A DNA stretch of 64,000 bases from positions 198,462,001-198,526,000 of the forward strand of contig OZ038378.1 in NCBI GenBank assembly GCA_964036045.1, given 5' to 3'. This stretch comes from Eutreptiella sp. 'Long Island Sound 2002'. Lineage: Eukaryota; Protista; Euglenida. This document shows, in pieces, positions 5,216 to 64,000 of this stretch. The notes under the pieces were generated by a model. That model saw only the letters and a program-made list of their open reading frames with translations. It was not told the origin of the DNA and did not search any database. How positions within the stretch are numbered: position 1 is the first letter of the stretch; each line of letters begins with the position of its first letter. The translations under genes and the position numbers were made by a program.

Positions 5216-5371
5216 CTGGCCAATCGTCCAAATCAGTGGCCCCGATCAGGGGCAAAAGAAGCTCATGCTGCTGCCGTTTGACCCCATCACGATATGCATT
5301 CAAAGCTGCAGTCATCGCCTGAGTAGAGATGGCCTTGGGGCCTTTCGGCACTGGGACAACAACGTCGGTGT
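5216..5371 (-). CDS. DUF1995-like protein, exon 4 (start of mature domain)
   Basis: Encodes DTDVVVPVPKGPKAISTQAMTAALNAYRDGVKRQQHELLLPLIGATDLDDWP. AG acceptor at 5373-5372 (the exact acceptor is ambiguous); GTACAC donor at 5215. Confidence 0.8.
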
Positions 5372-6776: not shown

Positions 6777-6906
6777 CTGTGGCTCCAGTGGTCGCCAACA
6801 TGGCCAAAGGCGGTACTTGCAGGGCGCTGTGACTTGGGACTGGCCTGAAACCCCATCGCGCTGCTGCAGTCGCAACGGCCATTCCCACGAAGGCCAGAAT
6901 GCGCAA
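6777..6906 (-). CDS. DUF1995-like protein, exon 3 (TM2 and end of presequence)
   Basis: CAG acceptor and GTACAC donor. Encodes LRILAFVGMAVATAAARWGFRPVPSHSALQVPPLAMLATTGAT; a hydrophobic stop-transfer segment followed by an AMLATTG-like motif is typical of euglenid class I presequences. Confidence 0.75.
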
Positions 6907-7357
6907 CTGCACCATACAGACCAGAATGTCAGGCAAGGGCACATGGAATTGTGCAGCATCGTACATACGGTGTTCAGAGGGGACATAGCGCCCCGAGAGA
7001 CACAGCACTCCCGGGGCAGAGTGTCGGGGAGGCATAGCAGGACAGTTTGCCCCTGCCCAACAGCACACTGGCTGGTGTCCAGCGGGTGAAGTGTTCCAAG
7101 GACAGAGTATGGCTGGGGCACAATATTCCAGGTGTTCTAGGGGCCCCTGCATTCTGCCCTCTGAACATATTGCCTTATAATCCCGAGTATTCGGGGGGCA
7201 TGGTGCTCAGGGTGTACATTACTCCAAAGCATGGTGTTGTAGGTGCATTGTACTCCAGCGGGATAGTGTTCATCTGGATGCCGTTGAAATACGTTGCCCC
7301 ATGGTCCGGGTGGAAGCTATTCTGGTGATCACAATGCCAATCACATAAAGCATTTAC

Positions 7358-7460
7358 AGGGTAAAGAAAGTGTATGAGGATAGATGCTATGGACGTTGCC
7401 TCTGCCTTTTCTGGGCGGACCCCTTTCTGGAGAGCTGCAGCTAGAAATCTGCTCCTGGAC
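7358..7460 (-). CDS. DUF1995-like protein, exon 2 (linker and start of TM2)
   Basis: CAG acceptor and GTAAAT donor; phases fit both neighbours (2 to 0). Encodes RSRSRFLAAALQKGVRPEKAEATSIASILIHFLYP. Confidence 0.65.
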
Positions 7461-7953
7461 CTGTCTCGACACAGCAAAGTACAGCCCAAGCGGGGGCTGA
7501 CAGCAGGAGACAACAGCAGACTGTACATTGTAAGCAGGTTGCGCTTTCTGACCGTGTATTTTTTTCTGGCACGGTAGTCTGATTATCTATTCAGGGAGCC
7601 CCCATTGGGAAATTTGCCTGTGGGATTTGCTGCACACTCTCTTCTGTTGCCTGCACCATTCTCTTGGCCTCCCCCTCAGACACCGTGAACCACTTTCAAC
7701 CCTTGGAGTCTAAAATGCTGGGCAGAAGACAGGGCAGAGCCCCAAATGGAATCATAAAAACCAGATATGCCTCAACCGCATGCAATTCATGTTTCAGTGG
7801 ATCATACTGCAGCGATTGTAGGCTGAGGGCCTATGCACACTGAGGGCTCCAGACCCCACCCTCACCAGTGTCTAAGTTCACAAGAGACAAAGGAGGCCAG
7901 GCAACTGCCGGCGCCTGGAATTCAACCGTTCGGTCAAGCTATGACTCAACATG

Positions 7954-8218
7954 CCTTCCCCCCCCCATGTCCATCCCCCCCCAAGGGACGACGGTTCCCC
8001 CCCCCCCCAGGGGGGGAACCGTCACCAGGTGACGGTTCCCCCCCTGGGGGGGGGGGGGGACCGTACACCACTCCCGACCAGCCAATTCTAGTATAACCCA
8101 ACTAAAAAATTTCTTCAGCGCCTTCGGCGCCTGTGATTTCCTATTGATTTCTTATTGTTCATGGGCCAAGTGACGGTTCCCCCCCTGGGGGGGGGATGGA
8201 CACGGGGGGGGGGGAAGG
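7954..8218. mobile_element. MITE-like foldback element
   Basis: Inverted termini CCTTC(C)nATGTCCATC(C)n ... (G)nATGGACAC(G)nAAGG, three internal GACGGTTCCCC motifs, and a GCGCCTTCGGCGC hairpin. No clear TSD. Confidence 0.6.
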
Positions 8219-8948
8219 TGGGTTCCTGCTCCTCAGCTCAAAACATCTTTTGTCCCTTCAGGGAACCCCTGGCACAGGGATGGGTGAATGAGGGGGCCCA
8301 GGAGACAGAGATGGCGAATGGTTGCACACAAACCAAACTTGTGCCTCCAGCACTGGGTGCTTGGGATGCTGAAACCATGTGATGTTTGAGCAGCTCTTCA
8401 TTGATGATGTCCACAGTATCCGAGGGCAACGCAGGCCTGCATAGCATTGTAAGGGGGGCCACAGCAGGTGATGGCAGATGCACACCAAGACATAAAGACA
8501 CACGCAATGTGTGCCAGCTGCCCCACCGCAGGGAATTGGTTCTTTTTTGTCTCACTCAACCCACACAGTGTGTGCCGTGGGCCTGTGGCAGTCCCCATAC
8601 TGTGTGTTCGTTTGTGTAGAACCATTGGCAGTGTAAGAAGCCCCCGTTCAGAGAAACAGGGGTACTTGGGAAGCATGTTCACCTGCGTGCAAAAAAAAAA
8701 TTGTCTTGGACACAAATATGGATGGGCAGGGCAGATAATGTCAGCATGTGCCACAGGCTACAAGCTACAAAGCGGTCACCAACCTGGGCAACTTGACGGG
8801 ATCCCTATGCTTCCTGTACAACTTGCCCATGCTTGTACTGCAAGGTTTTGGTACACTCAGGCTGCATTTTGTTCCTATCTACATGGATGGTGCCTCCAAG
8901 GGCATCAATTCCGGTCAACTTGAACTCCTGAAGTGCAAGAAACATGCC

Positions 8949-9127
8949 ACCCTGACCATCAAACTGCTGCCAGCTGCAGAAATTGTGACCTTGAACTACT
9001 GGAGCACAACAGACATGTCACCCTGACCATCAGACTGCTGCCAGCTGCAGAAATTGCGACCTTGAACTACTCAGAAATGTTACCCTGCCCATTGGATTCT
9101 GCCAGCTGCAGAAATCTGTCACCCTGA
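8949..9127. repeat. Imperfect tandem repeat with 62-71 bp units, about 2.5 copies
   Basis: ACCCTGACCATCARACTGCTGCCAGCTGCAGAAATTGYGACCTTGAACTACT recurs at 8949 and 9020, with a diverged third copy at 9082. Confidence 0.85.
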
Positions 9128-9813
9128 GATTGAATAGATGGAGCACAAATGCGCAATTGAAGCTCAGCCCCCGGAACAAGCAGTAGCATACACAGTGCAG
9201 TTAACAAAGAGCCAAAGAGCCAAAATATGCGGAAAAATATGCGGAAATATGCGGAATTATGCGAATCGCATAACCCCCCCCCCCTGTATGTCCGTGGATC
9301 GGAAGTGCGTTGCTCAGACAACTTTCCAAATTTCTGCACAGTGTGTCTCACAGTCCCAGTGCCTCAAGCAGATGTTTCCTATTATGTGGAGTAAATATTT
9401 GATCACAGGGGTAGTGTTTGCCGGGCACACTACTTTTGGACATGTGCCCTCGACCTTAGCCTCGAACTCACCCTCCCCTAGACAAGCCTCGAAGCGGACC
9501 GGACCATTCACACCCTGCCTGCCAAATCCACCCCAAACCATCTCTGTATAGTGCACACACCGCACCATCATCTTGCGTGGCAGCCTCGTTGGTTGCATTA
9601 GCATGGACAAGGCATGAGGGGGAACGTGTTCCCAGGGTCCACAAGTGGGGTATTGGACCTGCCTCCAAAGACAGGTTGTGTACTGACGATACCTGCCCCT
9701 TCATTTGGCCCTTCATCCGCCTCTGCCTTTGCCCTGCCGCTCCCCTGCACTGCCCTTTCCATGCGCAGCCATTGAGCCCAAGCCGCACCATCCGGTCACA
9801 GGCGCACAGATAC

Positions 9814-17927: not shown

Positions 17928-19199
17928 CTAATCAGTGCCACTCCAAGCACTCCGCGCCCGTCCTACAGGTACGGTAGGCACAGCACTCGAGCAACGGCGG
18001 CTGGCCCTAATATGCGCCAGGCGGTCCACTAGCTGCTGCACTTCGTCTTCCCCAATCACACGTACCTTAGGCGGCACCCACGCGTGCTTGTCATGAGCCT
18101 GGTTCAGAGCTGTCTGGCGGCGTTGCACCGCTTTGTACAAGAAACGGTTGGCAAGCTCCTCCTCACGCTTCGTCAACGGCTTTTGCAGGACCCCCTGAAG
18201 GGGGGCCGGCTGAGGGGCGGTCTGCTGCGCATCAGACTCAGGTCCCGGCTCCCGTTTCGGGGGGACAAACCGATCCACATTCCGCACAAGGAATTCGTGC
18301 AGACGCTTTTTGCTGATGACCTTCGCCGGCTTTGGCGTCGGCTCCTCTGGCGGTGGCTTGCTGTCCCGCGAGGGGGTGCTGTGCAATCGGTTGACGGAGT
18401 TCTGCAGCGCAGCAGGAGACAAATACACAGGCTCGTGGGCTGCTTGGGTGCCGCCGCTAGGCTCCAGCGGCTGCGGGACCCCAGCTGGGAACCACGCAGG
18501 GGACTTCTGTGGGCTTTGGGACCTACCTCTCTTCTGTGGCGGTGCCGCGGCATCCCGTTGGCAGGTGGGGCGCGACACCGGACTGCCCGGCACCCCCAGC
18601 ATCCCAGGCAGGTCCTGCGGAGGCACGAGGCTCAGCGGAAGACAACATTGGACCTGTTGATGCTGCAGGAGGTCATTGGCTGGGAGTGGCTGCGTAGCGA
18701 GCGCCAGGCCCCGGCGCACTTGATGGCTAATGCCGTTGCCCTTGAGGGTCACGGTGGTCAGGCCGCTGTTGCGCGCGACGGCAGCCACCAGGAACTTGCC
18801 ACCCGTGTCCGTTGCTTGCGTCAGGTCGAGAAGCAGTATCTTGAGGCACGTGTTGATCAACAATGCATCAGCCAACGCTAGCACACCCTCGTCACCCAAC
18901 GGATTGTTACTCAGGTCAAGTTTGCGCAAGGGACAGCCAGGATGCTGCAATGCATCGGCCAAGGCCAAAGCCCCAATGTGGCTGATTGTGCTATGGCTCA
19001 GATTAAGGTAACGGATGCATGCTCCCGGTTGCTTTAAATAGTTCGCAACGAAGGTGGCGCCTTCATCGCCCAACTGGAAGGGCAAGTTGCGGAACTGGAG
19101 CCAATCTTGCTGTGGATTTGCACATTCCGAATCCAAAATTGATCGCAAGCACTCTTCATCAACTTGATTCTTTTTAGCACATCGTTGCTTAAAGGGCAT
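17928..19199 (-). CDS. Intronless leucine-rich-repeat protein (RI-like/NLRC3-type LRRs) with a Pro/Ser-rich C-terminal half
   Basis: Continuous ORF 19472-17928; the probable start is MPFKQRCAKK at 19199. Repeats include LGDEGATFVANYL, IRYLNLSHSTISHIGALALADAL, LRKLDLSNNPLGDEGVLALADAL and LTTVTLKGNGI. Confidence 0.85.
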   Translation of the reverse strand: MPFKQRCAKKNQVDEECLRSILDSECANPQQDWLQFRNLPFQLGDEGATFVANYLKQPGACIRYLNLSHSTISHIGALALADALQHPGCPLRKLDLSNNPLGDEGVLALADALLINTCLKILLLDLTQATDTGGKFLVAAVARNSGLTTVTLKGNGISHQVRRGLALATQPLPANDLLQHQQVQCCLPLSLVPPQDLPGMLGVPGSPVSRPTCQRDAAAPPQKRGRSQSPQKSPAWFPAGVPQPLEPSGGTQAAHEPVYLSPAALQNSVNRLHSTPSRDSKPPPEEPTPKPAKVISKKRLHEFLVRNVDRFVPPKREPGPESDAQQTAPQPAPLQGVLQKPLTKREEELANRFLYKAVQRRQTALNQAHDKHAWVPPKVRVIGEDEVQQLVDRLAHIRASRRCSSAVPTVPVGRARSAWSGTD

Positions 19200-20411
19200 C
19201 AACACTAAGGAAGACGGAGGAGCATATCCTATAGTATGACCACTGTGAGTGCTCGCTTTGTGTGTGAGCCTAGCTTTTCCTTTGTAGACCACATCCCGTG
19301 AACGCAACAAGCGATTTCGCCTGAAACCGTACCGCATGTCATTTGCCAAACCGCCACAGCAGTGGTAGAATGTCCGTGAATCACCGATCTGCAGGGGCCT
19401 AACCACTCCCCCCTCCCAATTTTGAGCCATGAAGCACGGATAACCAACCCCATACCCCCCGACCCCCGCCACTGCCTACCCCCTGATCTGTGGATCAACC
19501 ATCAATCTGAGCAACTGTGTGGGCTGTACTGGGGACGAAGACTGTGGCTGCTCCAAGGGCGTCCTCAAGGGCATGGCACAAACATTTCACACATGCACAC
19601 ACAAACATGAGCAAATGAAAGCTTATGAGGGATGCAGTTGCAGGGAGGCAAGCAGCCATTAGGTAACAAAAGCACCAGAGAGCCTGCCTTTTTTTAAGGC
19701 TGCTCATTGAACCATAGCTTCATACAACGAAGGAAAACGGAATGTGCACAGGGTCACTCCAAGCAGTCTCATTGATATCCTACTCCTTTGTGCCCTGCTG
19801 CCGACCCGATCGAAATTCCTGGGGAAAAAGATCTCCATTGTACATCCATTGCAAAGGATAGTGTGGAACATGCAACGAAAAGACAATAATATGATCCGCG
19901 AATTGATCCCAAAAAAATCTGTTCAAAGTGCACCTGGTGATGTGGTGTGACATGCAAAAAAACAAACAAATGCCCCATACCCTTCTTGCAACACAGAGCT
20001 CTCTCAGTTCAACTGTTGATGCCATGTGTGACACGCAAGCAATTATTTAGAAGTCTAAGGGCACAACAAATGCAAGAAAAGCTGGTATTAAAAAGTACAC
20101 TCATTGATGTGGTGTGACATGCGAGCGGAGGATATAAATCCAGGAAGATGTATTGCAAAAGAATATTCAGACCGCACCCAGTGATGTGGTGTGACAACCA
20201 AAGCAACAAATGGTCATCAACTTGGGGGAAAATTGATCAAAAAATTATGCGCCTAAAACTGTTCAGGGAATCCAAAGTGGTCCATGGATTGCTACCTGGG
20301 GGGACCGCCCCCCCTGCTTGATGAACAGTGCCTGAGCCATAGGAGAGCCTGCTGAATCTAGTGAACATTCGATCATTCAACCTGCTGAATCCGGTCAACC
20401 TTCAAAAGCAG

Positions 20412-21191: not shown

Positions 21192-21308
21192 CTTGCTTTG
21201 CCTGTGCCAACCACCCAAGAACCCAAGAACCACCCAACAACCGCCATTGCTACCGGAGGAGGTGAAGCAAAGAGCCCCCATGGAGAATTTGCTGTACGTC
21301 CGGCACAG
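21192..21308 (+). CDS. Candidate upstream exon of the PFR-like gene
   Basis: CAG acceptor and GTAAAG donor, phase 0-0, open frame LALPVPTTQEPKNHPTTAIATGGGEAKSPHGEFAVRPAQ. No homology support. Confidence 0.3.
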
Positions 21309-21382
21309 GTAAAGCTATGGAGCTGAGGCGTGAAGAGTGGGTTTTATACTCATCGCCTACAGATGGCAGAAAGAAAGAAATA

Positions 21383-48802: not shown

Positions 48803-51800
48803 TCACCTCGAAGAGGGTTGTTAGATCAAGCGCAGGCGCGTACGCCATATACCCCCCTTTTTTGGGGTCATTCGCGTAGGATACCTCAAGATATGGTACC
48901 AGATGTCCAACCCCTTGTAAAATCATCATTTTAGGAGAGAAAATGATCCCCCAATGAATTTTTCGATTTTGACCCCCCTACCCCCCCGTACCCGGGTACC
49001 CCTTTTTGGGGGGGTGGGTGGGGGGTGGGGGGGTGTCGGGGGGGGGGGGGTCAAAACTTCTTTCCGTATTCTGGGTGCTGTGTGTGGATTTGGACCCAGG
49101 TCCGGGGCAACTTTTTTCTTGTACATGGACCCCCTAACCCATGGCGGGGGTCCCGGGTCCGGACTCCGGGTACCCCCGGTCGCCCCCCCCTATGGGCCCT
49201 TGCTGGTGAGGACTTAGCCGTTTTCACGCTGGATAAGGCTGTTTAGTGACACCTGCAAGATTTCCGAAATTGGACTTTTTCGGAAACCCTTCTGTCGCCC
49301 CTGGGATGGGTTTGGGTGATGATTTAGTGACAATACGGGTACTTGAGCACCCATGGGGACCCTCATAGTGGCTGCCAAGCTCATATAGCCCTAGCCATGG
49401 CCCCCCCAAAAGCCCTGAAATTGCCGTTGTGTAGGCTGTTTAGTGACACCTGCAAGATTTCTGAAATTCGCCTTTTTCCGAAACCCTTCTGTTGCCCCTG
49501 GGATGGGTTTGGGTGATGATTTAGGGACAGTACGGGTACTTGAGCACCCATGGGGACCCACGTAGTGGCCACTGGGCCCGTCTAGCCCGAGCCATGGGCC
49601 CCCCGAAAGCTTCAAAATTGCCGTTTGTAGGTGGTTCAATGGCCTTTGGTGTGTGCACAAACTGCTTAAGCAGGTTTCCAGCCTCTACAGGTCAAAAATG
49701 GAAAATCACCTCGCAGAGGTTGTTAGATCAAAGCCAGGCAGGCGTATATAGGGGAAAACGCCACATACCCCCCATTTTGGGCCTATTCGCGGACCCTACC
49801 CCAAGGGGTTGAATTGTTAGTTTAACCCCTTCTAAAATCCTTATTTTGTCCAATAAACGCATCCCCCAATGAGTTTTTGGTCCGGACCCCCCCAGACCCC
49901 CCCCACTTGAAACCCACTTTTTAGGGGGGGGTGGGGGGGGGTGGGGGGGGGGGGGTGGGGGGGGGGTCAAAAATGTCGAAAAAATGACCCCCCCTTTTTT
50001 TGGGTCGAAAATCATGAATCTTTTGGTTTTTTTCGATTTTGAGCCGAAAAAGTGTTTCCGGGTCCCGACTCCATAGGGTTTGTATGGGGCGGAGTGGGAC
50101 GAGCGCTGATGCAGTTTATGCACTTTTCAGCCATTTTTGGTATGTTGGCGGTTTTGGCGACCTCGGTGACCCCGTGGTATCCACTCTGAGGGGTGCGAGT
50201 GGGGATGTTGTGACAATATATGCCTACTAGGATACGGAAGGACGTTTTTTGTGGTCTCTAGGCTTGCTTAGGGCCGTTCACAACCCGTGCCAAAGACGCG
50301 AAATGACTGTTTCCACCAATAATGGCCTAGTGAAGGGGCGGGTACACAACCTGCTTATGCAGTTTTTCACCGCGGACAGCTCAAAAATCGAAGTTTTTGA
50401 AACTTACTTTTTTGATATTGTGACCACCCAATATGATCATCCAAGGTATGTAAAGCATGTTTTATGCCGTATTTACACGTTTTTCACCCTATTTGGGTAT
50501 CAGGTCCGGGGGGGGGGGGGGGGGGGCTCCCAAGGGATTGGTACACAACCTGCTTATGCAGTTTTTCACCCCGGACAGCTCAAAAATGGAAGTTTTTGAA
50601 ACCTGTTTTTTTGATATTGTGACCACTTAAAATGACCATCCAAGGTATGTAAAGCATGTTTTAGGCCGTATTTACACGTTTTTCACCCTATTTGGGTATC
50701 AGGTCCGGGGGGGGGGGGGGGGGGGGGCTCCCAAGGGATTGGTACACAACCTGCTTATGCAGTTTTTCACCCTAGGCTGCTCAAAAATCGAAGTTTCCGA
50801 AACTTGTTTTTTTGATATTGTGATCACCTAAAATGATCATCCAAGGTATGTAAAGCATGTTTTAGGCCGTATTTATGTACTTTCCACCCTATTTTGGGTG
50901 TGTGTTGCTCGGGGTAGATTCTCTGCGAGGTGGACTTGCCGAAGGCAATAGAATCACCTCGCAGAGGTTGTTAGATCAAAGCCAGGCAGGCGTATATAGG
51001 GGAAAATGCCACATACCCCCCCATTTTGGCCTTTTTGGGCCTATTCGCGTACCCTACCCCAAGGGGTTGAATTGTTAGTTTAACCCCTTGTAAAATCATT
51101 ATTTTGTCCAATAATCGCATCCCCCAATGAGTTTTTGGTCCGGACCCCCCCAGACCCCCCCCACTTGAAACCCACTTTTTTGAGGTTTTCAAGGAGGGGG
51201 GGGGGTGGGGGGGGGTGGGGGGGGGGTCAAAAAATGACCCCCCCTTTTTTTGGGTCGGAAATCATGAATCTTTTGGTTTTTTTTCGATTTTGAGCCGAAA
51301 AAGTGTTTCCGGGTCCCGACTCTATGGGGTTTGTATGGGGCGGAGTGGGACGAGCGCTTATGCAGTTTATGCACTTTTCAGCCATTTTTGCTATGTTCGT
51401 CGACCTCGGTGACCCCGTGGTACCTACTCTGAGGGGTGCAAGTGGGGATGTTGTGACAGTATATGCCTACTAGGTTGTTAGATCAAAGCCATGTACACCT
51501 TTGTTGCATTGGGATCCGACAACATGTACGCATTGTGGGAACCGGATCTCGCTTGTGTAAACATTTGCATTGTCTAATATTGTGTTGCATTCCCATTCGG
51601 CTTGGCTTCATTGTCTCTTGGGTTGAATTGGCTGGGATCTTCATGTTTTCTCTAAGTCTGGAACGTCATTGTGTGACGTAGATCGGTCTTGAAGTTTTGT
51701 GGTGCGTGCGGTAATCACCTCGCAGAGGTTGTTAGATCAAAGCCAGGCAGGCGTATATAGGGGAAAATGCCACATACCCCCCCATTTTGGCCTATTTGGG

Positions 51801-53012
51801 CCTATTCGCGTACCCTACCCCAAGGGGTTGAATTGTTAGTTTAACCCCTTGTNNNNNNNNNNNNNNNNNNNNNNNNNNNNNNNNNNNNNNNNNNNNNNNN
51901 NNNNNNNNNNNNNNNNNNNNNNNNNNNNNNNNNNNNNNNNNNNNNNNNNNNNNNNNNNNNNNNNNNNNNNNNNNNNNNNNNNNNNNNNNNNNNNNNNNNN
52001 NNNNNNNNNNNNNNNNNNNNNNNNNNNNNNNNNNNNNNNNNNNNNNNNNNNNGATATTGTGACCACCCAAAATGACCATCCAAGCTATGTAAAGCATGTT
52101 TTAGGCCGTATTACATGTTTTTCACCCTATTTGGGTATCAGGTCGGGGGGGGGGGGGGGGGGCTCCCAAGGGACGGGTGCACAACCTGCCTATGCACTTT
52201 TTCACCCCGGACAGCTCAAAAATGGAAGTTTTTGAAACTTGTTTTTGTGATATTGTGATCACCTAAAATGACCATCCAAGGTATGTAAAGCATGTTTTAG
52301 GCCGCATTTACGTGTTTTTCACCCTATTTGGGTATTAGGTCCCGGGGGTGGGGGGGGGTCTCCCAAGGGATTGGTACACAACTTGCTAGTGCAGTTTTTC
52401 TCCTGGGCAGCTCAAAAATCGAAGTTTTCGAAACTTGTTTTTCTGATACCGTGATCACCTAAAATGATCATCCAAGGTATATAAAGCATGTCTTAGCCGG
52501 TATTTGTGTAGTTTCCACCCTATTTTGGGTGTGTGTTGCTCGCGGTAGATTCTCTGCGAGGTGGACTTGCCGAAGGCAATAGAATTTTCTGAAACTGATT
52601 TTTCTGATACTTTCACCATCCAAAATGATCAAATATCCTATGTAAAGCATGTTTTAGCCCCACTTTATGTATTTTTCACCCTATTTGGGTGTTTGGGGGG
52701 GGGGGGGCTCCCAAGGGGTCTAAGGCACAACCTGCTTATGCAGTTTTCCAGCCTTGGCAGCTCAAAATGGAAATTTCCAAAACTGATTTTTTTTATATTT
52801 CGACCATCCAAAATGATCAAATATGCTATGCAAAGCATGTTTTAGCCCCTCTTTATGTGTTTTTCACCCTATTTGGGTGTTGTTGGGGGGGGGGGGGGGT
52901 GGCACCCAAGGGGTCTAGAGCACAACCTGCTTGTGCAGTTTTCCAACCTCGGCAGCTCAAGAATGGTTGTCCCTCTCCCCTCTTCGAGGTGCCTTGCCGA
53001 AGGCAAATAGAA
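48803..53012 (+). mobile_element. Type-B HINE-like element containing several type-A copies
   Basis: 5' TCACCTCGAAGAG at 48803; 3' CTCTTCGAGGTG-CC-TTGCCGAAGGCAA-ATAGAA ending at 53012. Type-A 5' ends at 49706, 50954 and 51715; type-A 3' ends at 50953 and 52584. Confidence 0.8.
51853..52052. other. Assembly gap (200 N)
   Basis: Run of N within the repeat nest. Confidence 1.
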
Positions 53013-53350
53013 TTTCACGGAAGCCCCAGGATTTTCTGTGGTAAATCACCTCGAAGAGAGTTTGTTAGATCAAGCGCAGGCGCGGGCGTCATATACCCCC
53101 CTTTTTTGGGGTCATTCGCGTAGCATACCCCAAGGCATGATATTGGATGTCCAACCCCTTGTAAAATCATTATTTTGCCCAGTAAGACCATCCCCCAATG
53201 GATTTTTGATTTTGAGGCCTCTACCCCCTAAAACTGGATATCACTTTTTTGGGGGGTGGGGGGGGGCTGGGGGGGGTGTTGGGGGGGGGGGGGTCAAAAG
53301 TTTTTGCTTAATAGCCTACAAGCAGTGGCGACGCAAAGTGCGGATAACAC

Positions 53351-53425
53351 GGCCAGCGGTCCAGTGGTAAAGCATCCGAGTCGTGATTAGTAGGCGTCGG
53401 TTCGAATCCTGGTCTGCAGAATTTT
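53351..53425 (+). ncRNA. tRNA-like (pseudo-tRNA) unit, His-like GTG triplet, followed by TTTT
   Basis: A-box-like GGTCCAGTGGTAAAGC, B-box GGTTCGAATCC, T4 at 53422-53425. The anticodon stem does not pair. Confidence 0.55.
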
Positions 53426-53449
53426 AGCGCCGCCGCCGGCGGCGGCACC

Positions 53450-53525
53450 AAAATAGCCAAACTGGGGTTCGAACCGCCGACCTGGCTGGTACCGGTCGGC
53501 TGCTTTACCACTCGACCACTGCTTG
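53450..53525 (-). ncRNA. Second tRNA-like unit, inverted relative to the first
   Basis: Minus strand TGGTCGAGTGGTAAAGC (A-box) and GGTTCGAACCC (B-box), followed by TTTT (AAAA at 53450-53453 on plus). Confidence 0.55.
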
Positions 53526-53912
53526 GATTGCAGCGAAGGGCCTCCCTGCTGCTTGGGGCCGGCATCTGCCACTGACAAAAAACCCAAACTGTGTGTATCT
53601 GACTGACTGCCTGCTTGCTGGCTCAGGGACTGATTGGCTGACTGTCAGCCTCTCTTCGAGGTGCACTGCCGAAGGCAATAGAATTTGGCGGTCAATTCGA
53701 AAGATGAAATTTTCCACGTTCGTTTATTGCCCATGAAACCCAGGGGGGGGGGGCGTGGAAAAAATTCGTGTGAATTTTTTTCTGTACCCCCCCCCCCCTC
53801 CCTCCTCTGGGGTTACCCCCCGAAAAAAACTAGCACCCCCTGTAGGAATTTTTTTCCCAAGGAGGATTTGCATGTAACCTTCACTTTGCTACATTGTGCG
53901 CCATAAGGAAAA

Positions 53913-56900
53913 TCACCTCGCAGAGGTTGTTAGATCAAAGCCAGGCAGGCGTATATAGGGGAAAACGCCACATACCCCCCTTTTTGGGCCTATTCGCGTA
54001 CCCTACCCCAAGGGGTTGAATTGTTAGTTTAACCCCTTGTAAAATCATTATTTTGTCCAATAAACGCATCCCCCAATGAGTTTTTGGTCCGGACCCCCCC
54101 AGACCCCCCCCACTTGAAACCCACTTTTTGGGGGAGGGGTGGGGGTGGGGGTGGGGGGGGGGGTGGGGGGGGGTCAAAAATGTCGAAAAAATGACCCCCC
54201 TTTTTTGGGTCGAAAATCATGAATCTTTTGGTTTTTTTCGATTTTGAGCCGAAAAAGTGTTTCCGGTCCCGACTCCATAGGGTTTGTATGGGGCGGAGTG
54301 GGACGAGCGCTGATGCAGTTTATGCACTTTTCGGCCATTTTTGCTATGTTGGCAGTTTTGGCAACCTCGGTGACCTCGTGGTATCCACTTTGAGGGGTGC
54401 GAGTGGGGATGTTGTGACAATATATGCCTACTAGGATACGGAAGGACGTTTTTTGTGGTCTCTAGCCTTGCTTAGGGCCGTTCACAACCCGTGCCAAAGA
54501 CGCGAAATGACTGTTTCCACCAATAATGGCCTAGTGAATGGGCCGGTACACAACCTGCTTATGCGGTTTTTCACGCTGGGCAGCTCAAAAATTGAAGTTT
54601 TTGAAACTTGTTTTTTTTATATTGTGACCACCTAAAATGACGATCCAAGGTATGTAAAGCATGTTTTAGGCCGCATTTACGTGTTTTTCACCCTATTTGG
54701 GTATTGGCCGCATGCGGGGGGGGGTCTCCCAAGGGATGGGCACACAACCTGCTTATGCAGTTTTCCACCCTCGGCAGTTCAAAAATGGAAGTCACCTCGC
54801 AGAGGTTGTTAGATCAAAGCCAGACAGGCGTTTATAGGGGAAAACGCCACATACCCCCCCATTTTGGCCATTTTGGGCCTATTCGCGTACCCTACCCCAA
54901 GGGGTTGAATTGTTAGTTTAAATCCTTGTAAAATCATTATTTTGTCCAATAAACGCATCCCCCAATGAGTTTTTGGTCCGGACCCCCCCAGACCCCCCGC
55001 ACTTGAAACCCACTTTTTTTGGGGGGGGGGGGGGGGGCAAAATGTCGAAAAAAGACACCCCCTTTTTTTGGGTCGAAAATCATGAATCTTTTGGTTTTTT
55101 CGATTTTGAGCCGAAAAAGTGTTTCCGGGTCCCGACTCCATAGGGTTTGTATGGGGCGGAGTGGGACGAGCGCTGATGCAGTTTATGCACTTTTCAGCCA
55201 TTTTTGCTATGTTGGCAGTTTTGGCAACCTCGGTGACCCCGTGGTATCCACTTTGAGGGGTGCAAGTGGGGATGTTGTGACAATATATGCCTACTAGGAT
55301 ATGGAAGGACGTTTTTTGCAGTCTCTAGCCTTGCTTAGGGCCGTTCACAACCCGTGCCAAAGACGCGAAATGACTGTTTCCACCAATAATGGCCTAGTGA
55401 ATGGGCCGGTACACAACCTGCTTATGCGGTTTTTCACGCTGGGCAGCTCAAAAATCAAAGTTTTCGACACTTGTTTTTTTTGATGTTGTGACCACCTAAA
55501 ATGACCATCCAAGGTATGTAAAGCATGTTTTAGGCCGTATTTGCGTGTTTTTCATCCTATTTGGGTATTAGGTCCGGGGGGGGGGGGTCTCCCAAGGGAT
55601 TGGTACACAACCTGCTCATGCAGTTTTTCACCCCGGGCAGCTCAAAATGGAAGTCACCTCGCAGTGGTTGTTAGATCAAAGCCAGGCAGGCGTTTATAGG
55701 GGAAAACGCCACATACCCCCCCATTTTGGCATTTTTGGGCCTATTTGCGTACCCTACCCCAAGGGGTTGAATTGTTAGTTTAACCCCTTGTAAAATCATT
55801 ATTTTGTCCAATAAACGCATCCCCCAATGAGTTTTTGGTCTGGAGCCCCCCAGACCCCCCCACTTGAAACCCACTTTTTTAAGGTTTTGTGGGAGGGGGG
55901 GGGGTGGGGGGGTGGGGGTGGGGGGGGGGATACAAAAGGACTTTTTTTGCAGTCTGTAGCCTTGCTTAGGGCCGGTTAATGCCCGTGCCAAAGACGTGAA
56001 ATGTCTGTTTCCACCAATAATGGCCTAGTGAATGGGCCGGTACACAACCTGCTTATGCAGTTTTTCACCCCGGACAGCTCAAAAATCGAAGTTTTCGAAA
56101 CTTGTTTTTTTGATATTGTCATCACCTACAATGACCATCCAAGGTATGTAAAGCATGTTTTAGGCTGTATTTACGTGTTTTTCACTTTATTTGGGTATTG
56201 GGTGGGGGGGGGGGGGGGCTCCCAAGGGATGGGTACACAACCTGCTTGTGCAGTTTTTCACCCCGGGCAGCTCAAAAATCGAAGTTTCCGAAACTTGTTT
56301 TTTGGATATTGTGACCACTTAAAATGACCATCCAAGCTATGTAAAGCATGTTCTAGGCCGTATTTACGTGTTTTTCATCCGATTGGGTATTAGGTCCGGG
56401 GGGGGGGGGGTCTCCCAAGGGATTGGTACACAACCTGCTTATGCAATTTTTCGCCCTTGGCAGCTCAAAAATCGAAGTTTATGAAACTTGTTTTTTTGAT
56501 ATTGTGATCACCTAAAATGGCCATCCAAGGTATGTAAAGCATGTTTTAGGCCATAGTTACGTGTTTTTCACCCTATTTGGGTATTGGCTTGGGGGGGGGG
56601 CGGGCTTCCAAGGGATGGGTACACCCACAACCTGCTCATACAATTTTTTCACCCTGGGCAGCTCAAAAATCGAAGTTTTGGAAACTTATTTTTTTGATAT
56701 CGTGATCACGTAAAATGATCATCCAAGCTATGCAAAGCATGTTTTAGCCCGTATTTATGTACTTTATACCCTATTTTGGATGTGTGTTGCTTGGAGTAGA
56801 TGCTTTGCGAGGTGGACTTGCCGAAGGCAATAGAATTTTTGAAAGTTGTGTTTTTGATATTGTGACCACCTAAAATGACCATCCAAGCTATGTGAAGCAT

Positions 56901-58538
56901 TTTTTAGGCCGTATTTACATGTTTTCACCCTATTTGGGTATTAGGTCCAGGGGGGGGGGGTCTCCCAAGGGATTGGTACACAACCTGCTTATGCGGTTTT
57001 TCACCCCGGACAGCCGAAAAGTCGAAGTTTTTGAAACTTGTTTTTTTGATATTGTGACCACCTACAATGACCACCCAAGCTATGTAAAGCATGTTTTAGG
57101 CCGAATGTACATGTTTTTCACACTATTTGGGTATCAGGTCCGTTGGGGGGGGGGTCTCCCAAGGGATTGGTACACAACCTGCTTATGCAGCTTTTCACCC
57201 CGGACAGCCGAAAAATCGAAGTTTTTGAAACTTGTCTTTTTGATATTATGACCACCTAAAATGACCATCCAAGCTATGTAAAGCATGTTTTAGGCCGTAT
57301 GTACATGTTTTTCACACTATTTGGGTATCAGGTCCGGGGGGGGGGGGTCTCCCAAGGGATTGGTACACAACCTGCTTATGCAGTTTTTAACCCCGGACAG
57401 CTCAAAATCGAAGTTTTTGAATCTTGTTTTTTTCGATATTGTGACCACCTAAAATGACCATCCAAGGTATGTGAAGCATGTTTTAGCCCGTATTTATGTA
57501 GTTTTCACCCTATTTTGGGTGTGTGTTGCTCGGGGTAGATTCTCTGCGAGGTGGACTTGCCGAAGGCAATAGAATTTTTGAAACTTGTTTTTTTGATTTT
57601 CTGACCACCCAAAATGACCATCCAAGGTATGTAAAGCATGTTTTAGGCCGTATTTACATGCTTCTCACCCTATTTGGGTATTTGGTCTGGGGGGGGGGGG
57701 GTCTCCCAAGGGATTGGGCTTTTCAGCCATTTTTGCTATGTTGGCGGTTTTGGCGACCTCGGTGACCCCGTGGTACCCACTTTGAGGGGTGTGAGTGGGG
57801 ATATTGTGACAGTATATGCCTACTAGGATACGGAAGGACGTTTTTTGCAGTCTGTAGCTTTGCCTAGGGCTGTTCACAACGCGTGCCAAAGATGCGAAAT
57901 GGCTGTTTCAACCAATAATGGCCTAGTGAATGGGCCGGTACACAACCTGCTCATGCAGCTTTTCACCCCGGGCAGCTCAAAAATCGAAGTTTTCGAACTT
58001 TGTTTTTTTGACATTGTGACCACTCAAAATGATCATCCAAGCTAGTTACGCATGTTTTAGGCCGTGTTTACATGTTCTTCACCCTATTTGGGTATTGGCC
58101 GCATGGGGGGGGGGGGGGGGGGCTCCCAAGAGATTGGTACACAACCTGCTTTTGCAGTTTTTCACCCTAAGCAGCTCAAAAATCTAAGTTTTTGTAACTT
58201 GTTTTTTGGATATTGTGACCACTTGAAATCACCATTTAAGGTATGTAAAGCATGTTTTAGGCTGTATTTACATGTTTTTGACCCCATTTTGTTATTGGCC
58301 AAACGGGGGGTTCTCCAAGGGATTGGTACACAACCTGCTAATGCAGTTTTTCACCCTGGGCAGCTCAAAAATGTAAGTTTTCGAAATCTGTTTTTATGAT
58401 ATTGTGACCACTTAAAATGACCATTTAAGGTATGTCAAGCATGTTTTAGGCTGTATTTATGTGGTTTTCACCATAGTTCGGTATTAGGTCGCGGGGGGGG
58501 GGGGGGGCTCCCAGGGGATTGGTACACAACCTGCTTAT
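53913..58538 (+). mobile_element. Triple-nested type-A HINE array with ~190-bp tandem repeats
   Basis: 5' ends at 53913, 54792 and 55654; 3' ends at 56835 and 57574. Repeat period 193-198 bp measured at 56074, 56267, 56460 and 56658. The outermost copy is cut off at 58538. Confidence 0.85.
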
Positions 58539-58903
58539 TCAAAAATTGATCTTGTTAAATGCAATCGTCATCCTGCGGACAAGGGGCCCCTGGCGCGGGA
58601 TGGACTCCCACACGCCTTGTGTGGCCCCTTGAGATGGACTCTGAATGGGCAAATCATGACTACACACTTCTTCTTTGTGGCCCCTCCAGGCAATGGCCGG
58701 GCACCTCTCTTCATATAGGGGTGGGTGGGGTCTTAGGTCACCCACCGGGGGCGTTTACGCATTGTGGGAACCGGCTTGGATCTCCGTTGTGTGAACCGCC
58801 TTGGAGGCCTTTTTTATTTTGTTAACTACACCATCAAAGTGTTCTCATTAGGGACCGGTGCAAAATTATGAAGGTTAACCTCGTAGGCCGGATACCCAAC
58901 TGT

Positions 58904-59066
58904 GAGGACGAGGCCCTTCACCTATGACCCCATGTGTATTGCGCGTGGAGGATTTATATTACCTATTGTACCTATAAGATACTCAACTAGGAGGACGAGG
59001 CCCTTCACCTATGACCCCATGTGTACTACGCGTGGAGGCTTTATATTACCTATTGTACCTATAAGA
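58904..59066 (+). repeat. 87-bp direct repeat x2 upstream of the Helitron ORF
   Basis: GAGGACGAGGCCCTTCACCTATGACCCCATGTGTA...CCTATTGTACCTATAAGA at 58904 and 58991. Confidence 0.9.
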
Positions 59067-59699
59067 CCCATATCACCCATAGGCTCTATAGCACCTATGC
59101 AACGTGTGGGACTCATATGACCAAAACAACCTATGGCACCAATGACACCCACCCACCTATATGACATGTAGCACCTAAAAACCTACGGGACCTATTAAAC
59201 CTATAGGAGATGAATTTAAGGTAAACAGCATGCAACCTTCTTTGGAATGCCTTTGGGATTATTTGGGTCTACCTATTGGGTGCAGTGATCACATACGGCA
59301 AGCACTCAAACTCATCAAACAGCAAAGGGGAATGAAGTTCAAAGTTAAGTGCACCATGTCATCTACATATTGAGGTCTTATGTGTCCTATAGGTCTTATA
59401 TCGTAGATAGGAGGTAGAGGTGTTATAGCTCTTATAAGTTATGTAAATGCCATAGGCCCTGTTGGTGCTGTAGGTGCTATAGGTGTAATAGGCCCGGTAC
59501 TTGTGATGGGTTGTGTATGTCCTGTATGTCCTACTAACGTGTGTTCCCCCACCCTTCGCTCATCGTTCATTGCTCGAGAATGTTTATCATGCATTGTGTC
59601 TTTTGTTCTTTCAGGATCTTTGTCTTAGGGTGCTCTTGCACTTTTCTGTCAACTTTGCCTTGATCTTCGATTGACGGACTACCATCCAGTCCATAAAGA

Positions 59700-61211
59700 A
59701 TGACAACGCATTATGGACTAGTTTGGATGAACAACAGCTGCTTTGCGGCATCCAGTCTCCAATTCCTTGGCACAATCCCACTTTTTGTTGATTCTGTGAG
59801 CAGTGACTTAGAATCCAATAAGACAGACTCTCAAATCCGTCTTGCAGTGGAACACCTTTTGATTGCTTTGATGGAATGTGGTAATGGAGAACTGCCACCC
59901 AAATCGCCATACACGTTTGGTAATAATGATGATTGTCACCAACAATTGCGAATTCACGTTGCCCATGCTGCGGAGTACTTAGTTCATTTCCATCCAACAC
60001 ACAACCGGCAACAAGATGTGCATGAATTTGTGGGCTTGCTATTCGCGTGGATTTGGAACCTTGTATTACCATTGCAAAGTGCAGACGTTCGCACTGAAGC
60101 AGAGGCGTCGACTCTTGAATTCCCCTTTGTACCACAAGCAATGTCCAAAGTAGGCAGCCAAGTTTTACATTCCATTTCATGCTCAAATTGTCAATATGGC
60201 AATTTACAAGTATGCATCGACATTTCTTCTTGGACGGTCGGTGTAAGTAATACACAAGGTTTACAAGGTGCTATGCAAAGTTTATTTGCCACAGAAAGTA
60301 ATGTTGGAAATTGTACGGCTTGTTCGGGAATGGCGTGCTTGAAGCGTCGAAAGCAACTGATAACGGCATCGCAATATATCATGATACATTTGTCCTTGTT
60401 CACTTTCAATGCAGCTACTCAACAACCTTCAAAGCTACAATGTTTTTATGGGTGCCCATCACATTTTACTATTGAAGATTGTTTCGTAGGCTCACCAAAT
60501 AAGGTGTTGCATTTGCAGTTGATGAGTATCATCTTACACCGCGGTAGCTCTACCTTGTCGGGTCATTATGTGTGCTTGACTCAACGGAAAGGTTTGTGGT
60601 ACGCCTGTGACGATGAAGGTGTCACACTTGTTGAGGCGCCCAATCAATGGTTTCTGAACAATGATGACTTCACACCATACATGTATATGTTCAAAACCAC
60701 AATTCAAGATTTGAACAATGCCCATCCAAGTGACAAAGGTATGAGTGCACTTGAGCAAATGTCCAACAAGGATTGTGAACCGGTACATGATTGCACATTC
60801 AGTGCAACTGAGCACATGTCCAACATGTTGAGTGATAATTGCACTGGTCAAGAAAGCCGACATGGGGATGATGAGTCAATGCATGACTGCCCCATGAGTG
60901 CGGCTCACCACTTGTCTGATGAATCCAATGACACTTGCAATGATCAAGATGATACTTGTTCCAGCAAGTCGCATTGCACAACAACCACATCCAATGACTC
61001 AAATGAAAGTGGAGATACACAAATGTCTGTGCCCAATACTAGGCCGGGGTCACCAGCTAATGCGGATCAAACATCGGACTTTCAATTCACCACTATGCTA
61101 GCAACTCTTCCTTCATCGCTATCACCATCCCCACTGGCTAAAGTGGAATGCTTCATTGACGTTTTATCTGCCGAATTGTCGCCATTTCCCACAATACCAT
61201 GGGCTTTCTAA
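59700..61211 (+). CDS. Ubiquitin-specific protease (peptidase C19/USP) domain plus acidic linker; N-terminal part of the Helitron polyprotein
   Basis: Cys box GLVWMNNSCFAASSLQFL, QQDVHEF, zinc-ribbon CSNC and CTAC, His box HRGSSTLSGHYVC and WYACDDEGV. Confidence 0.85.
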   Translation: MTTHYGLVWMNNSCFAASSLQFLGTIPLFVDSVSSDLESNKTDSQIRLAVEHLLIALMECGNGELPPKSPYTFGNNDDCHQQLRIHVAHAAEYLVHFHPTHNRQQDVHEFVGLLFAWIWNLVLPLQSADVRTEAEASTLEFPFVPQAMSKVGSQVLHSISCSNCQYGNLQVCIDISSWTVGVSNTQGLQGAMQSLFATESNVGNCTACSGMACLKRRKQLITASQYIMIHLSLFTFNAATQQPSKLQCFYGCPSHFTIEDCFVGSPNKVLHLQLMSIILHRGSSTLSGHYVCLTQRKGLWYACDDEGVTLVEAPNQWFLNNDDFTPYMYMFKTTIQDLNNAHPSDKGMSALEQMSNKDCEPVHDCTFSATEHMSNMLSDNCTGQESRHGDDESMHDCPMSAAHHLSDESNDTCNDQDDTCSSKSHCTTTTSNDSNESGDTQMSVPNTRPGSPANADQTSDFQFTTMLATLPSSLSPSPLAKVECFIDVLSAELSPFPTIPWAF

Positions 61212-62738
61212 AATTGTTTGGATGAATTGAAATCAAACGGAATTGTTCTACCACAAAAGCATTGTGCTTTTCGTGGTTGCACGTGGCAAGGAGATGACGA
61301 AGCTAGCTTAATCGAGCATGTGACGGGCCACCACAAAGCATCTTTTGCCCACGTTGACGAATTATCACATGCTTGTATCACGATGCAAGATGCATACCAT
61401 TTGTACCAAGAAGCCATTGCCCACATTGAACGTCAGCGCATGCCCTTGGTTGGTTTTGCAATTGACCGTCGCATTGCTGTTTCATTCGCGCGGCGCTACC
61501 GAGATGAAAACATTATGTCACTCGTATGCAGCATTTGTGCACAAATTCATAGTGTGGATTTTGAATGTCATGGAAGGCCACCAATTCAATGGCATTCCCC
61601 ATTGGACTCCAACAATGGAGGATCCTTTTTTGGGATGTGCAAAGAAGACACCGAGAGATTACTTGGTCTCACCACATATTTCAATGCCTACGGAACCAAA
61701 GACAGTGGCATGAGACAACAAGTACAAACCAAATCGTGCCCGAATGTTCCTTTCACAGATGGAATTATTCAAGTCCTATGTTGTCCCGAAGATCGTCGTT
61801 GTGTTGCATGTCCTCGTAATGCATGTGGCATACACGACATGAATTGCCCCTTGTGTCCAAAACGTGAATTGCCAATATGTGCATCTTGCTCCGATAAATT
61901 ATCCTGACCACGCCCAAAAATGCCTCCATTTGCTTTGGCAAATGAAATGTGGATAGGGTACATTAATGAGTACATCTATGAGCACCAAGTTACATACATT
62001 GAATTGTTGTGTGCCAGTCCAGTGAACACTGCAATGTTGAGCTTGACATTACAAAGGTTCAATGACCGAGTAAGTGGCTCAAGTTTAGCTCATTTGTCAA
62101 ACGCACGCCTTGGCGCAAAGGGAAATGTCACTTGTTTTTCTCTGCCATGGGAGGAAGTCCTCCAAACATTTTCCCAAAATGGTGGAAGGAATCATTTACC
62201 CAGATTAGGTGAGGATTTGGCTGGCCTCGTGCAAGTGGTTGTCGAAAGTCACACTCAGGATGACACGCAATTAGTTGTACAGCACGGGCGCGTGCGTCTT
62301 GCTGTGGTCGTACACTTGATAGCATGAATGATTGAGCGCAACCCCCCCGCGTACGTGGGTATAAATATGGTTGATGTTGAACAACGATCAACACTCTTTC
62401 CGGTTGATGGCATCCCTCCCGAGATCATACGGGTCATAGTGCCTCACAAGAATGGCCCTGACCTTCATGACGGAAAGGCCGCGTTACCTCACGAGCACGG
62501 ACGATCCATTGATGGCAACATATTTCTGTCCCATGTCAACGGCGTGCAATTGGATAGATACTCCAATTCCGCCGTTGACATCAATGAACAACGTATACAT
62601 CGTATCCAATCCGTGGAAGAAGCCTTGAAGTTCCCTACCGCGAAAGATGACATGTCATCAGACGAGGATGAAGTGGAAAGCATAAGTTCTAGTCCTCCAA
62701 ACCTTTCTTCGCAGTGCCATGTCGGGGCAAGAATATGA
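61212..62738 (+). pseudogene. Helitron polyprotein middle part: Cys/His fingers and DUF6570-like domain, interrupted by in-frame stops
   Basis: Same frame as the USP ORF. Contains HCAFRGCTW...HVTGHH, CSICAQIH, CCPED..C..C, and PPFALANEMWIGYI...VTYIELLCASP...KGNVTCFSLPW. TGA at 61905 and 62325. Confidence 0.75.
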
Positions 62739-64000
62739 AATGCAAAGTGTGGATTCCACGAAGACACATGTTTCTACACAAAGAAGCCAGGGTGGGGACA
62801 AACCAACTAACACCACTGGTGATGAGCCAGTTGATAGTGAGACACTACAAGATAGCATTCATTCTCTTTGCATTCGAACAGGAACCACCATGCAAGACCA
62901 ACTACACCCAAGCTTCATAATAATTGCGTTTGCGTTCTTATTTGATTTTGGTGTTGGTAGCCCCGATTTACGCAATCGTTCGCAATGGAGACGTGACTTC
63001 AATGCACCTCGAGTTGACTTCCCACAATTCGCGGCAGCTTTAGTCCGTCGTATTGAGGGTCAATTTAGGAGGGATTGGATTTTTGTGTTTGCAGCGTGGA
63101 ACTTGATTTTCCGATCCGTGATTAATCTTTCTCGATACATCTTCAAAGGAAGGCTTTGTGATGGTACTACTTTGGCGTCCGAGCAAATTACAGCAGAACA
63201 GTATTGCAATGCAAGCAAAGCAATAACAGCAAGTTTGACCGGAAGCTACCTCACCAAAGATGGCTCTCTTCGCCAAGTAAACGGTGACTTGTCAAAAGTT
63301 CCCTTTGTGCCAAATTTACCCCCCCTAGCTAGAGACATCTTACAAAATGTACAAAATGTTTCTACGCGCATAGAAGGCACACATGAGGTGCGCCGCTTGA
63401 TGCGACATGAAATCCAAGCCTTCCGTGTTTTTTATGGAGCCCCTCTCATTGTCACATTTTCTCCCAATGAGAGACACAACACGCTCATGCTTCGCCTATC
63501 AAGGACAAGCCAAAATGATCTGGTTTGCATAGCTCAACCATGGTTGAGACAATGGGGAGGGCATGCACATCCATCTCTGGAATTACCAATTGACTCATTG
63601 ATTTCGGCTTTGCCATCATATGAACAACGCAAGCTCATGCTCTCCCAAGACCCCCTGGCTTGCATGTCCGCATTTCGCATTATAGTGCGTTTGGCAATGT
63701 CCACCATCTTTGGTGTTCGTGTGTGTCTTTGTTGTCCACGGTGCAACTCTCCGATGGGAAAATCGGCATGCCAAAACATCTTTGGTTCGGTTGCTTCTAG
63801 GGAAGGTGGATTCATTGGAAGGTTAGATGCTTGTTTAGGGAGCATTGAGAACCAAAAAGAAGGGGTTCTACACATTCACTGGTTGTTATGGCCCCAATGT
63901 TTGAGTCAATTCTCCTCAATACACGACATCTCTTTGTTAATCAAAAAAGAAGGCGAAAAGTTAGTAAAGCAATACACTGCTTACAAAAGTTACATTTGTC
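62686..64000 (+). CDS. Helitron Rep (HUH) N-terminal region, open to the window edge (absent from the ORF track)
   Basis: Stop-free frame of about 435 codons: AFAFLFDFGVGSPD, QFRRDWIFVFAAWNLIFRSVINL, IEGTHEVRRLMR...YGAPLIVTFSPNERH, QDPLAC, CPRCN...CQNIFGS, and the HUH motif GSIENQKEGVLHIHWLLW. Confidence 0.85.

Follow-up and report, generated by a model that had tools for sequence, protein, structure and literature searches.

The 64,000-nt stretch of DNA analysed here (the window) ends within a Helitron-like rolling-circle transposon whose transposase begins with a ubiquitin-specific protease (USP, class C19). The fusion of this USP to the replication initiator (Rep) and helicase of the element (together, RepHel) is real, and the ancestral element encoded a single polyprotein made up of USP, zinc finger (ZnF), DUF6570, Rep and PIF1 helicase. 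During diversification of the family the USP has been under constraint as strong as that on the Rep nuclease, and we infer that it is an active deubiquitinase serving the element. The copy in the window is a dead, truncated 5'-proximal fragment, and we compared it with four sister copies (L001, L002, L006, L007) and three diverged lineages (L003, L004, L005), all fetched from one European Nucleotide Archive (ENA) assembly.

On the plus strand, four stretches from position 59700 are open in one frame (59700-61208, 61212-61904, 61908-62324 and 62328-62735) with single stops between them, and a fifth, in the +1 frame, runs on to the window end. Pfam recognises UCH (PF00443) in residues 6-330 of the first of these open reading frames (ORFs), with E=2.3e-20 and 73.7 bits (cutoff 23.9) over profile positions 2-253 of 254, DUF6570 in 61920-62324 (E=5e-10) and Helitron_like_N in the +1 frame at 62869-63999 (E=3e-12). 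The sequence-only reading had described a USP with Cys box, QQDxHEF box, zinc ribbon and His/Asp boxes in frame with a zinc finger and DUF6570, followed across a frameshift by a Helitron Rep with the HUH motif. The Pfam matches agree with this, and all of the motifs could be located, including the HUH motif as ENQKEGVLHIH (Table 1). The finger region gives a weak, below-cutoff match to Zap1_zf2 in Pfam (E=0.012), and its finger pattern recurs in lineage L004 (44% identity). Only the first 1416 of about 3,327 residues fall within the window, whose end cuts the Rep; the catalytic tyrosine motif of the Rep, the helicase and a C-terminal J domain all lie beyond it.

The sister copies supply what the window lacks. 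In L006, one ORF of 1,897 aa (P0178) holds UCH at residues 2-321, DUF6570 at 719-870 and Helitron_like_N at 1103-1379, and the next ORF in the same frame carries PIF1 and a DnaJ domain, giving the order USP, finger, DUF6570, Rep, PIF1 helicase and J domain. The whole L006 frame of 3,327 codons is broken by a single TGA, at which L001 and L002 have Ser. This bears out the proposal of one ancestral polyprotein with a presumed PIF1 helicase, as does the profile search that had been suggested for it: UCH, DUF6570 and Helitron_like_N are recovered in the window, and PIF1 in L001, L002, L006 and L007. The polyprotein is closed by a J domain with an HPD motif (ORF at L006 15833-19981, J domain residues 1339-1380; end of the big ORF of L002 at about 18129), which is in frame with the helicase in both L006 and L002. 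No J domain was detected in the diverged lineage L004.

With P0178 as tblastn query, the window copy and its four sister copies are collinear from residue 1. The diverged lineages are collinear as well, with 32-36% identity in the USP; L004, at 34% identity in the USP and 47% in the Rep, continues into a 2,862-aa ORF with DUF6570, Rep and PIF1. In every lineage about 10-25 residues separate the Cys box from the first Met, so the USP is the N-terminus of the transposase itself. The initial reading had allowed that other copies of this Rep might lack the USP, or that the USP might be a host gene. We found the USP with the Rep in all sampled copies and under purifying selection, which excludes both a host gene next to the element and a captured fragment evolving neutrally.

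Two kinds of internal repeat were observed in the sister copies. A coding tandem array with a period of 78 bp (26 codons) lies between helicase and J domain (L006 18124-19014, L007 14986-15972); its copy number varies between copies, a possible reason for the frame differences in this part. In L002, about 1,055 bp are tandemly duplicated within the element (6762-8557 and 8638-9690); the duplicated part corresponds to window 60276-61330, that is, to the C-terminal half of the USP and the linker.

Selection was estimated as the ratio of nonsynonymous to synonymous substitution rates (dN/dS) by the Nei-Gojobori method (NG86) on codon alignments to the L006 frame, with L006, L001, L007 and the window as sublineages. 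Between sublineages the ratio is 0.21-0.41 for the USP and 0.25-0.36 for the Rep, so the constraint on the two is comparable; it is 0.39-0.78 for the ZnF-DUF6570 region and 0.6-1.5 for the linker. Comparing the window with L006 (98.6% identical) gives 0.81 overall and comparing L002 with L006 gives 1.0, values that neutral decay following insertion would produce.

The USP retains the features of its class at great sequence distance. The motifs YG[LM]xxxxNSCFAA, QQDxHE and SGHY...W..C.D and the zinc-ribbon cysteines are kept in all lineages, and the catalytic triad is present as Cys14 (NNSCF), His289 (SGHY) and Asp304/305 (CDDEG), conserved also in L003, L004 and L005. An AlphaFold2 (AF2) model built from an alignment of family members and distant USPs has a mean predicted local distance difference test (pLDDT) score of 80.8 and a predicted template modelling (pTM) score of 0.83. 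The leading Protein Data Bank (PDB) matches of this model in Foldseek are all USP catalytic domains (Ubp8, USP46, USP1, USP2, USP12 and USP7, at 13-19% identity), with E down to 2e-19 overall, a TMq of 0.76 for USP2 and E around 1e-19 for Ubp8 and USP46. The predicted structure matches the fingers-palm-thumb fold with its zinc ribbon, and both CxxC pairs are present.

At the sequence level, no solved relative scores better than E=5e-8. The nearest single-domain USPs outside the assembly come from scattered taxa and match no better than E around 1e-11 to 1e-13, with 23-30% identity, which argues against recent capture; judged by these distances, the USP is an old, divergent domain and no recent copy of a host gene. 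Besides the ORF in the window itself, an exhaustive protein search retrieved a few close fragments from ENA contigs; with the 503-aa ORF as query, all matches were ORF fragments, again from ENA contigs. The USP region gave no match among long proteins, P0178 itself not being among the cluster representatives searched. Long top matches from fish, bird and avocado owe their high scores to the summing of 3-7 tandem UCH domains, and Pfam finds no Helitron domain in them. We also considered a giant-virus origin of the USP, since a language-model look-alike search ranked Nucleocytoviricota USP clusters first. This lead was not supported: the viral structural models (13-17% identity, E around 1e-17) score no better than cellular USPs.

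With RepHel as query, the nearest proteins outside the family are at 33-36% identity and come from Symbiodiniaceae (Effrenium voratum, Symbiodinium natans) and from ENA contigs; two of these relatives, P0173 and P0193, stem from two other ENA assemblies. No USP was found in the wider relatives P0173, P0164, P0169 and P0193 by BLASTP, Pfam or profile comparison. Upstream of DUF6570, a different domain of about 170 aa with invariant NxCLxD...GxHxD is present in P0173, the P0193 family, three Effrenium proteins and P0164. It matches no Pfam family, and its AF2 model (pLDDT 71) has only OTU domains among its top 50 PDB matches. No such OTU-like domain was found in the USP-bearing family (family A). 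A quick maximum-likelihood tree of the DUF6570-Rep region, unrooted and built without L003, L005 and L007 (decayed or redundant), groups the USP-bearing lineages in one clade (Shimodaira-Hasegawa-like approximate likelihood ratio test, SH-aLRT, 100) apart from those with the OTU-like domain. This fits the replacement of one deubiquitinase class by another upstream of DUF6570, in either direction, the tree being unrooted.

DUF6570 lies upstream of the Rep and, in L006, in the same ORF, as is characteristic of HLE2, the Helitron2/Helentron clade of Helitron-like elements. Pfam finds no apurinic/apyrimidinic (AP) endonuclease (Exo_endo_phos) in the second ORF of L006, the L004 ORF, P0173, P0164, P0169 or P0193, and we therefore class the family as HLE2, or Helitron2-like, and not as a Helentron in the strict sense. 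We are confident that the element is an autonomous Helitron-like element of the HLE2 clade (DUF6570-bearing, Helitron2-like), lacking the AP-endonuclease and encoding a transposase of about 3,330 aa led by a selected USP.

The intact transposase would run from an N-terminal USP through an acidic linker, a C2H2 finger with a Cys-rich region, DUF6570, the HUH Rep and a PIF1-type helicase to a repeat-rich tail and the J domain. The USP may remove ubiquitin from this huge protein or from its partners, allowing them to escape proteasomal degradation, and the J domain may recruit Hsp70 to fold or remodel the same machine. Protection from the proteasome, as proposed for Helentron VTD deubiquitinases and for the tegument enzyme of herpesviruses, seems to us the likeliest role of the USP, and we lean towards it with modest confidence. 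The USP could conceivably act at the donor or target site, on chromatin or on factors of replication and repair, though we think this rather unlikely.

Several observations weigh against an active deubiquitinase in a living element of this kind. In every lineage, W, R or S stands in place of the canonical oxyanion Asn at Cys-5 (GLxNxGNxC). Each of the five family copies sampled has an interrupted frame, and current activity of the family is thus not evident. The termini of the element and its target site were not located, and the 5' leader merges into shared tandem repeats. The Foldseek scores behind the OTU-like assignment in the relatives are weak (best E=1.8e-3, TM 0.3-0.5). Finally, the only RNA evidence consists of short contigs from two metatranscriptome runs, at 90-97% identity over USP and Rep parts; these are compatible with transcription of the family, and DNA carry-over is possible. 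The stretch itself occurs in sequencing runs of two organisms and in estuary metagenomes.

The missing oxyanion Asn is also what would speak for a catalytically weak or dead USP, retained as a ubiquitin-binding module that targets the transposase to ubiquitinated chromatin (e.g., H2A/H2B-Ub or PCNA-Ub), and the best fold matches do include USPs of chromatin and repair (Ubp8 of SAGA, USP1, USP46, USP12). However, no lineage has lost the catalytic Cys, His and Asp or the QQDxHE box, and the ranking among USP structures is unspecific at such low identities throughout, which makes a pure binding module quite improbable. The Asn at Cys-2 is invariant in all lineages, and CYLD likewise lacks the oxyanion Asn at Cys-5, yet is active. 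We regard its absence as a variant feature that is not decisive and does not exclude the domain from USP/C19.

A processing protease that cuts the polyprotein, in the manner of the papain-like proteases of RNA viruses, would suit so large a protein (about 3,330 aa), which has long disordered linkers. Cleavage and deubiquitination are combined in many viral proteases of USP fold or OTU type (PMC9741609), and coronavirus PLpro is among the weaker fold matches. Yet the stretches between domains contain neither LxGG nor RGG; LxGG occurs just twice, both times beside the Walker A box of the helicase, and self-processing is therefore not indicated. No ubiquitin-like domain was found in the polyprotein, and the complete fold with its zinc ribbon fits ubiquitin binding; we consider cleavage in place of deubiquitination improbable. 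Passive capture of a host gene fragment with no role for the element would be in keeping with the reputation of Helitron-like elements as gene capturers and with published treatment of UCH as a captured, separate ORF. Here, though, the USP stands in frame at the extreme N-terminus of the transposase, its dN/dS between sublineages is low, its catalytic motifs persist across the diverged lineages, and single-domain USPs outside the family are only remotely similar. Passive capture is thus largely refuted, and we consider it extremely improbable.

We return to a USP that serves the element. Three unrelated deubiquitinase classes (OTU, VTD and USP) are now found inside rolling-circle transposases. 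Since these classes recur, since the USP is in frame and selected like the nuclease, and since the relatives carry an OTU-like domain, we argue that ubiquitin removal is a needed function and not cargo. It is tempting to speculate that, in one protist HLE2 clade, deubiquitination is obligatory for transposition: the element would bring its own active deubiquitinase, whose class has been exchanged upstream of DUF6570 (OTU-like in dinoflagellate-type relatives, USP here), and would add a J domain at the C-terminus; no transposon is known to have been described with such a self-stabilising USP-RepHel-J machine. We offer this tentatively, as possible rather than probable. The added J domain suggests that very large transposases may bring their own protein-stability tools, and the compact USP of about 335 aa and the matched OTU-like domain offer themselves for direct testing.

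The decay of the window copy can be read base by base from alignment to L006, a nearly intact sister copy. The three stops and the frameshift counted in the sequence-only reading are exact, being three true nonsense changes and one 5-bp deletion; the further in-frame stop at 62736 results from the frameshift. In addition, a 322-bp leader segment that ends 165 bp 5' of the ATG is inverted relative to all four sister copies, with base-exact junctions of at most 1 nt ambiguity at which flanking inverted repeats are absent. Owing to the nonsense mutations, the frameshift and the inverted leader segment, the window copy cannot make the transposase, and it is itself of no functional consequence.

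Around the coding region, a 25-bp leader minisatellite is present as about two units in the window (58760-58805) and as kb-long arrays in the sister copies. Homology between sister copies at the 3' side ends near L006 21004-21061, adjoining a 40-nt inverted repeat. The arms of this repeat, each about 40 nt (L006 21023-21065 and about 21270-21312), span about 200 bp, with the distal arm inside the adjacent repeat unit. The inverted repeat may represent a terminal hairpin, or else it may be part of the flanking HINE-like element. A satellite with a period of about 195 bp and HINE-like units are found on both sides of autonomous copies. Their orientation varies between copies, which is why they look like preferred neighbours or targets and not like fixed termini. 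The coordinates of all these features are collected in Table 1.

Table 1. Coordinates of features in the window copy and in related sequences.
Feature	Sequence	Position	Strand	Basis or remark
Satellite/HINE-like flank	Window	49700-58540
Non-coding leader, common to sister copies	Window	58674..59212	+	blastn, 90-99% identity to L001, L002, L006, L007; contains 132-bp unit, two 25-bp repeat units and segment A (58804-59212) with 87-bp x2 tandem repeat (Tandem Repeats Finder, TRF)
322-bp leader segment, inverted vs sister copies	Window	59213..59534	.	Minus-strand matches between collinear plus-strand flanks
Leader directly 5' of start codon	Window	59535..59699	+	Collinear with sister copies
USP/C19 domain, uninterrupted, extreme N-terminus	Window	59700..60719	+	Pfam, AF2, Foldseek, conserved motifs
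Cys box NNSCFAASSLQ	Window	59730-59762	+	Catalytic Cys14 codon 59739-59741
RQQDVHEF (QQDxHEF box)	Window	60006-60029	+
Zinc-ribbon CxxC pair CSNC	Window	60180-60191	+
Zinc-ribbon CxxC pair CTAC	Window	60312-60323	+
His box SGHYVC	Window	60558-60575	+	His289 at 60564-60566
CDDEG	Window	60606-60620	+	Asp304/305 at 60609-60614
Ser/Asp/Thr-rich linker, no domain	Window	60720..61208	+	Composition; dN/dS (see text)
30-bp in-frame extra segment vs L006, in linker	Window	61165-61194	+	Indel list of alignment to L006
Nonsense CAA>TAA	Window	61209..61211	+	Gln485 of P0178
Zinc-finger region	Window	61212..61904	+	C2H2-like finger C-x4-C-x12-H-x3-H at 61263-61334; Cys-rich cluster 61779-61889 leading into DUF6570
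Nonsense CGA>TGA	Window	61905..61907	+	Arg717; other copies in public-run contigs read C at 61905
DUF6570	Window	61908..62324	+	Pfam
Nonsense TGT>TGA	Window	62325..62327	+	Cys857; other copies in public-run contigs read T at 62327
Polyprotein continuation, DUF6570 to Rep	Window	62328..62712	+	Ends at 5-bp deletion
5-bp ATATA deletion, shifts frame	Window	after 62712	+	Public-run contigs of other copies carry ATATA behind 62712
Rep (HUH) nuclease domain, +1 frame	Window	62713..64000	+	Pfam; P0178 residues 988-1416 at 96.7% in tblastn
HUH motif E-N-Q-K-E-G-V-L-H-I-H	Window	63865-63891 (VLHIHWLLW)	+
25-bp minisatellite arrays	L001	1-1438 and 3530-5608
25-bp minisatellite array	L002	about 4090-5880
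25-bp minisatellite array	L006	4473-8929
25-bp minisatellite array	L007	3167-4841
Satellite/HINE-like flanks	L006	1928-4224 and 21081-23382
Satellite/HINE-like flank	L007	18128-20448
OTU-like domain, about 170 aa	P0173	250-460
OTU-like domain, about 170 aa	P0193	336-525
OTU-like domain, about 170 aa	P0172	77-265
OTU-like domain, about 170 aa	P0164	1105-1315

In the rest of the window, no second copy of the element was found, and an Rfam search of the window gave no match. Among six long ORFs tested, the only other one recognised by Pfam is a 514-aa ORF on the minus strand (17931-19472) with a match to LRR_6 (E=1e-7). The spliced leaders of dinoflagellates and Euglena are absent from the window and from L001-L007.

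Whereas the sequence-only reading knew of no described USP-Rep fusion, and of none in euglenids, an association of a USP with HLE2 elements is already in the literature. HELIANO (Li et al. 2024, NAR, PMC11417382) names UCH as one of 20 domains that are stable components of Helitron-like elements, nearly exclusively in HLE2 and enriched in its subgroups c and d, mostly in lungfish and axolotl, and also uses DUF6570 as an HLE2 marker. UCH is counted there with domains in ORFs other than RepHel and is treated as captured; DnaJ is not mentioned in the main text. Erven et al. (2022, Nat Commun, PMC9741609) showed that VTD domains of Helentrons are active deubiquitinases that cleave K48, K63 and K11 chains, noted OTU domains in such elements, and proposed that these enzymes prevent the degradation of proteins needed for transposition. 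Our literature search found no paper on Helitrons in Euglena. What is new here is the in-frame N-terminal USP together with the C-terminal J domain, in a protist lineage.

Like the UCH-bearing HLE2 elements (c/d) of HELIANO, with which we compare by description, the present family is marked by DUF6570 and holds UCH (PF00443) at a fixed position relative to RepHel, here upstream. It differs in that UCH is the in-frame N-terminus of the transposase and not a separate ORF, in its J domain, and in its host, which appears protist-like, the nearest named Rep relatives being dinoflagellates as opposed to vertebrates. With the VTD and OTU deubiquitinases of Helentrons it shares a cysteine deubiquitinase placed inside a rolling-circle transposase, with non-homologous classes replacing one another. 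The protease class is USP/C19 here, the AP-endonuclease was not found, and activity, biochemically established for VTD, is in our case predicted.

Outside transposons, herpesvirus UL36/BPLF1 offers a parallel, as a deubiquitinase at the extreme N-terminus of a giant protein (about 3,000 aa or more) of a selfish replicon, though it has the VTD fold class and is a structural tegument protein of a virus rather than part of a transposon. Polyomavirus large T antigen combines a J domain, whose HPD motif recruits Hsp70, with an origin-binding domain and a helicase. The resemblance lies in joining a replication initiator and helicase to an HPD-bearing J domain, as in L006 and L002; large T has its J domain at the N-terminus and an SF3 helicase, whereas here the J domain is C-terminal and the helicase is of the PIF1 type (SF1B).

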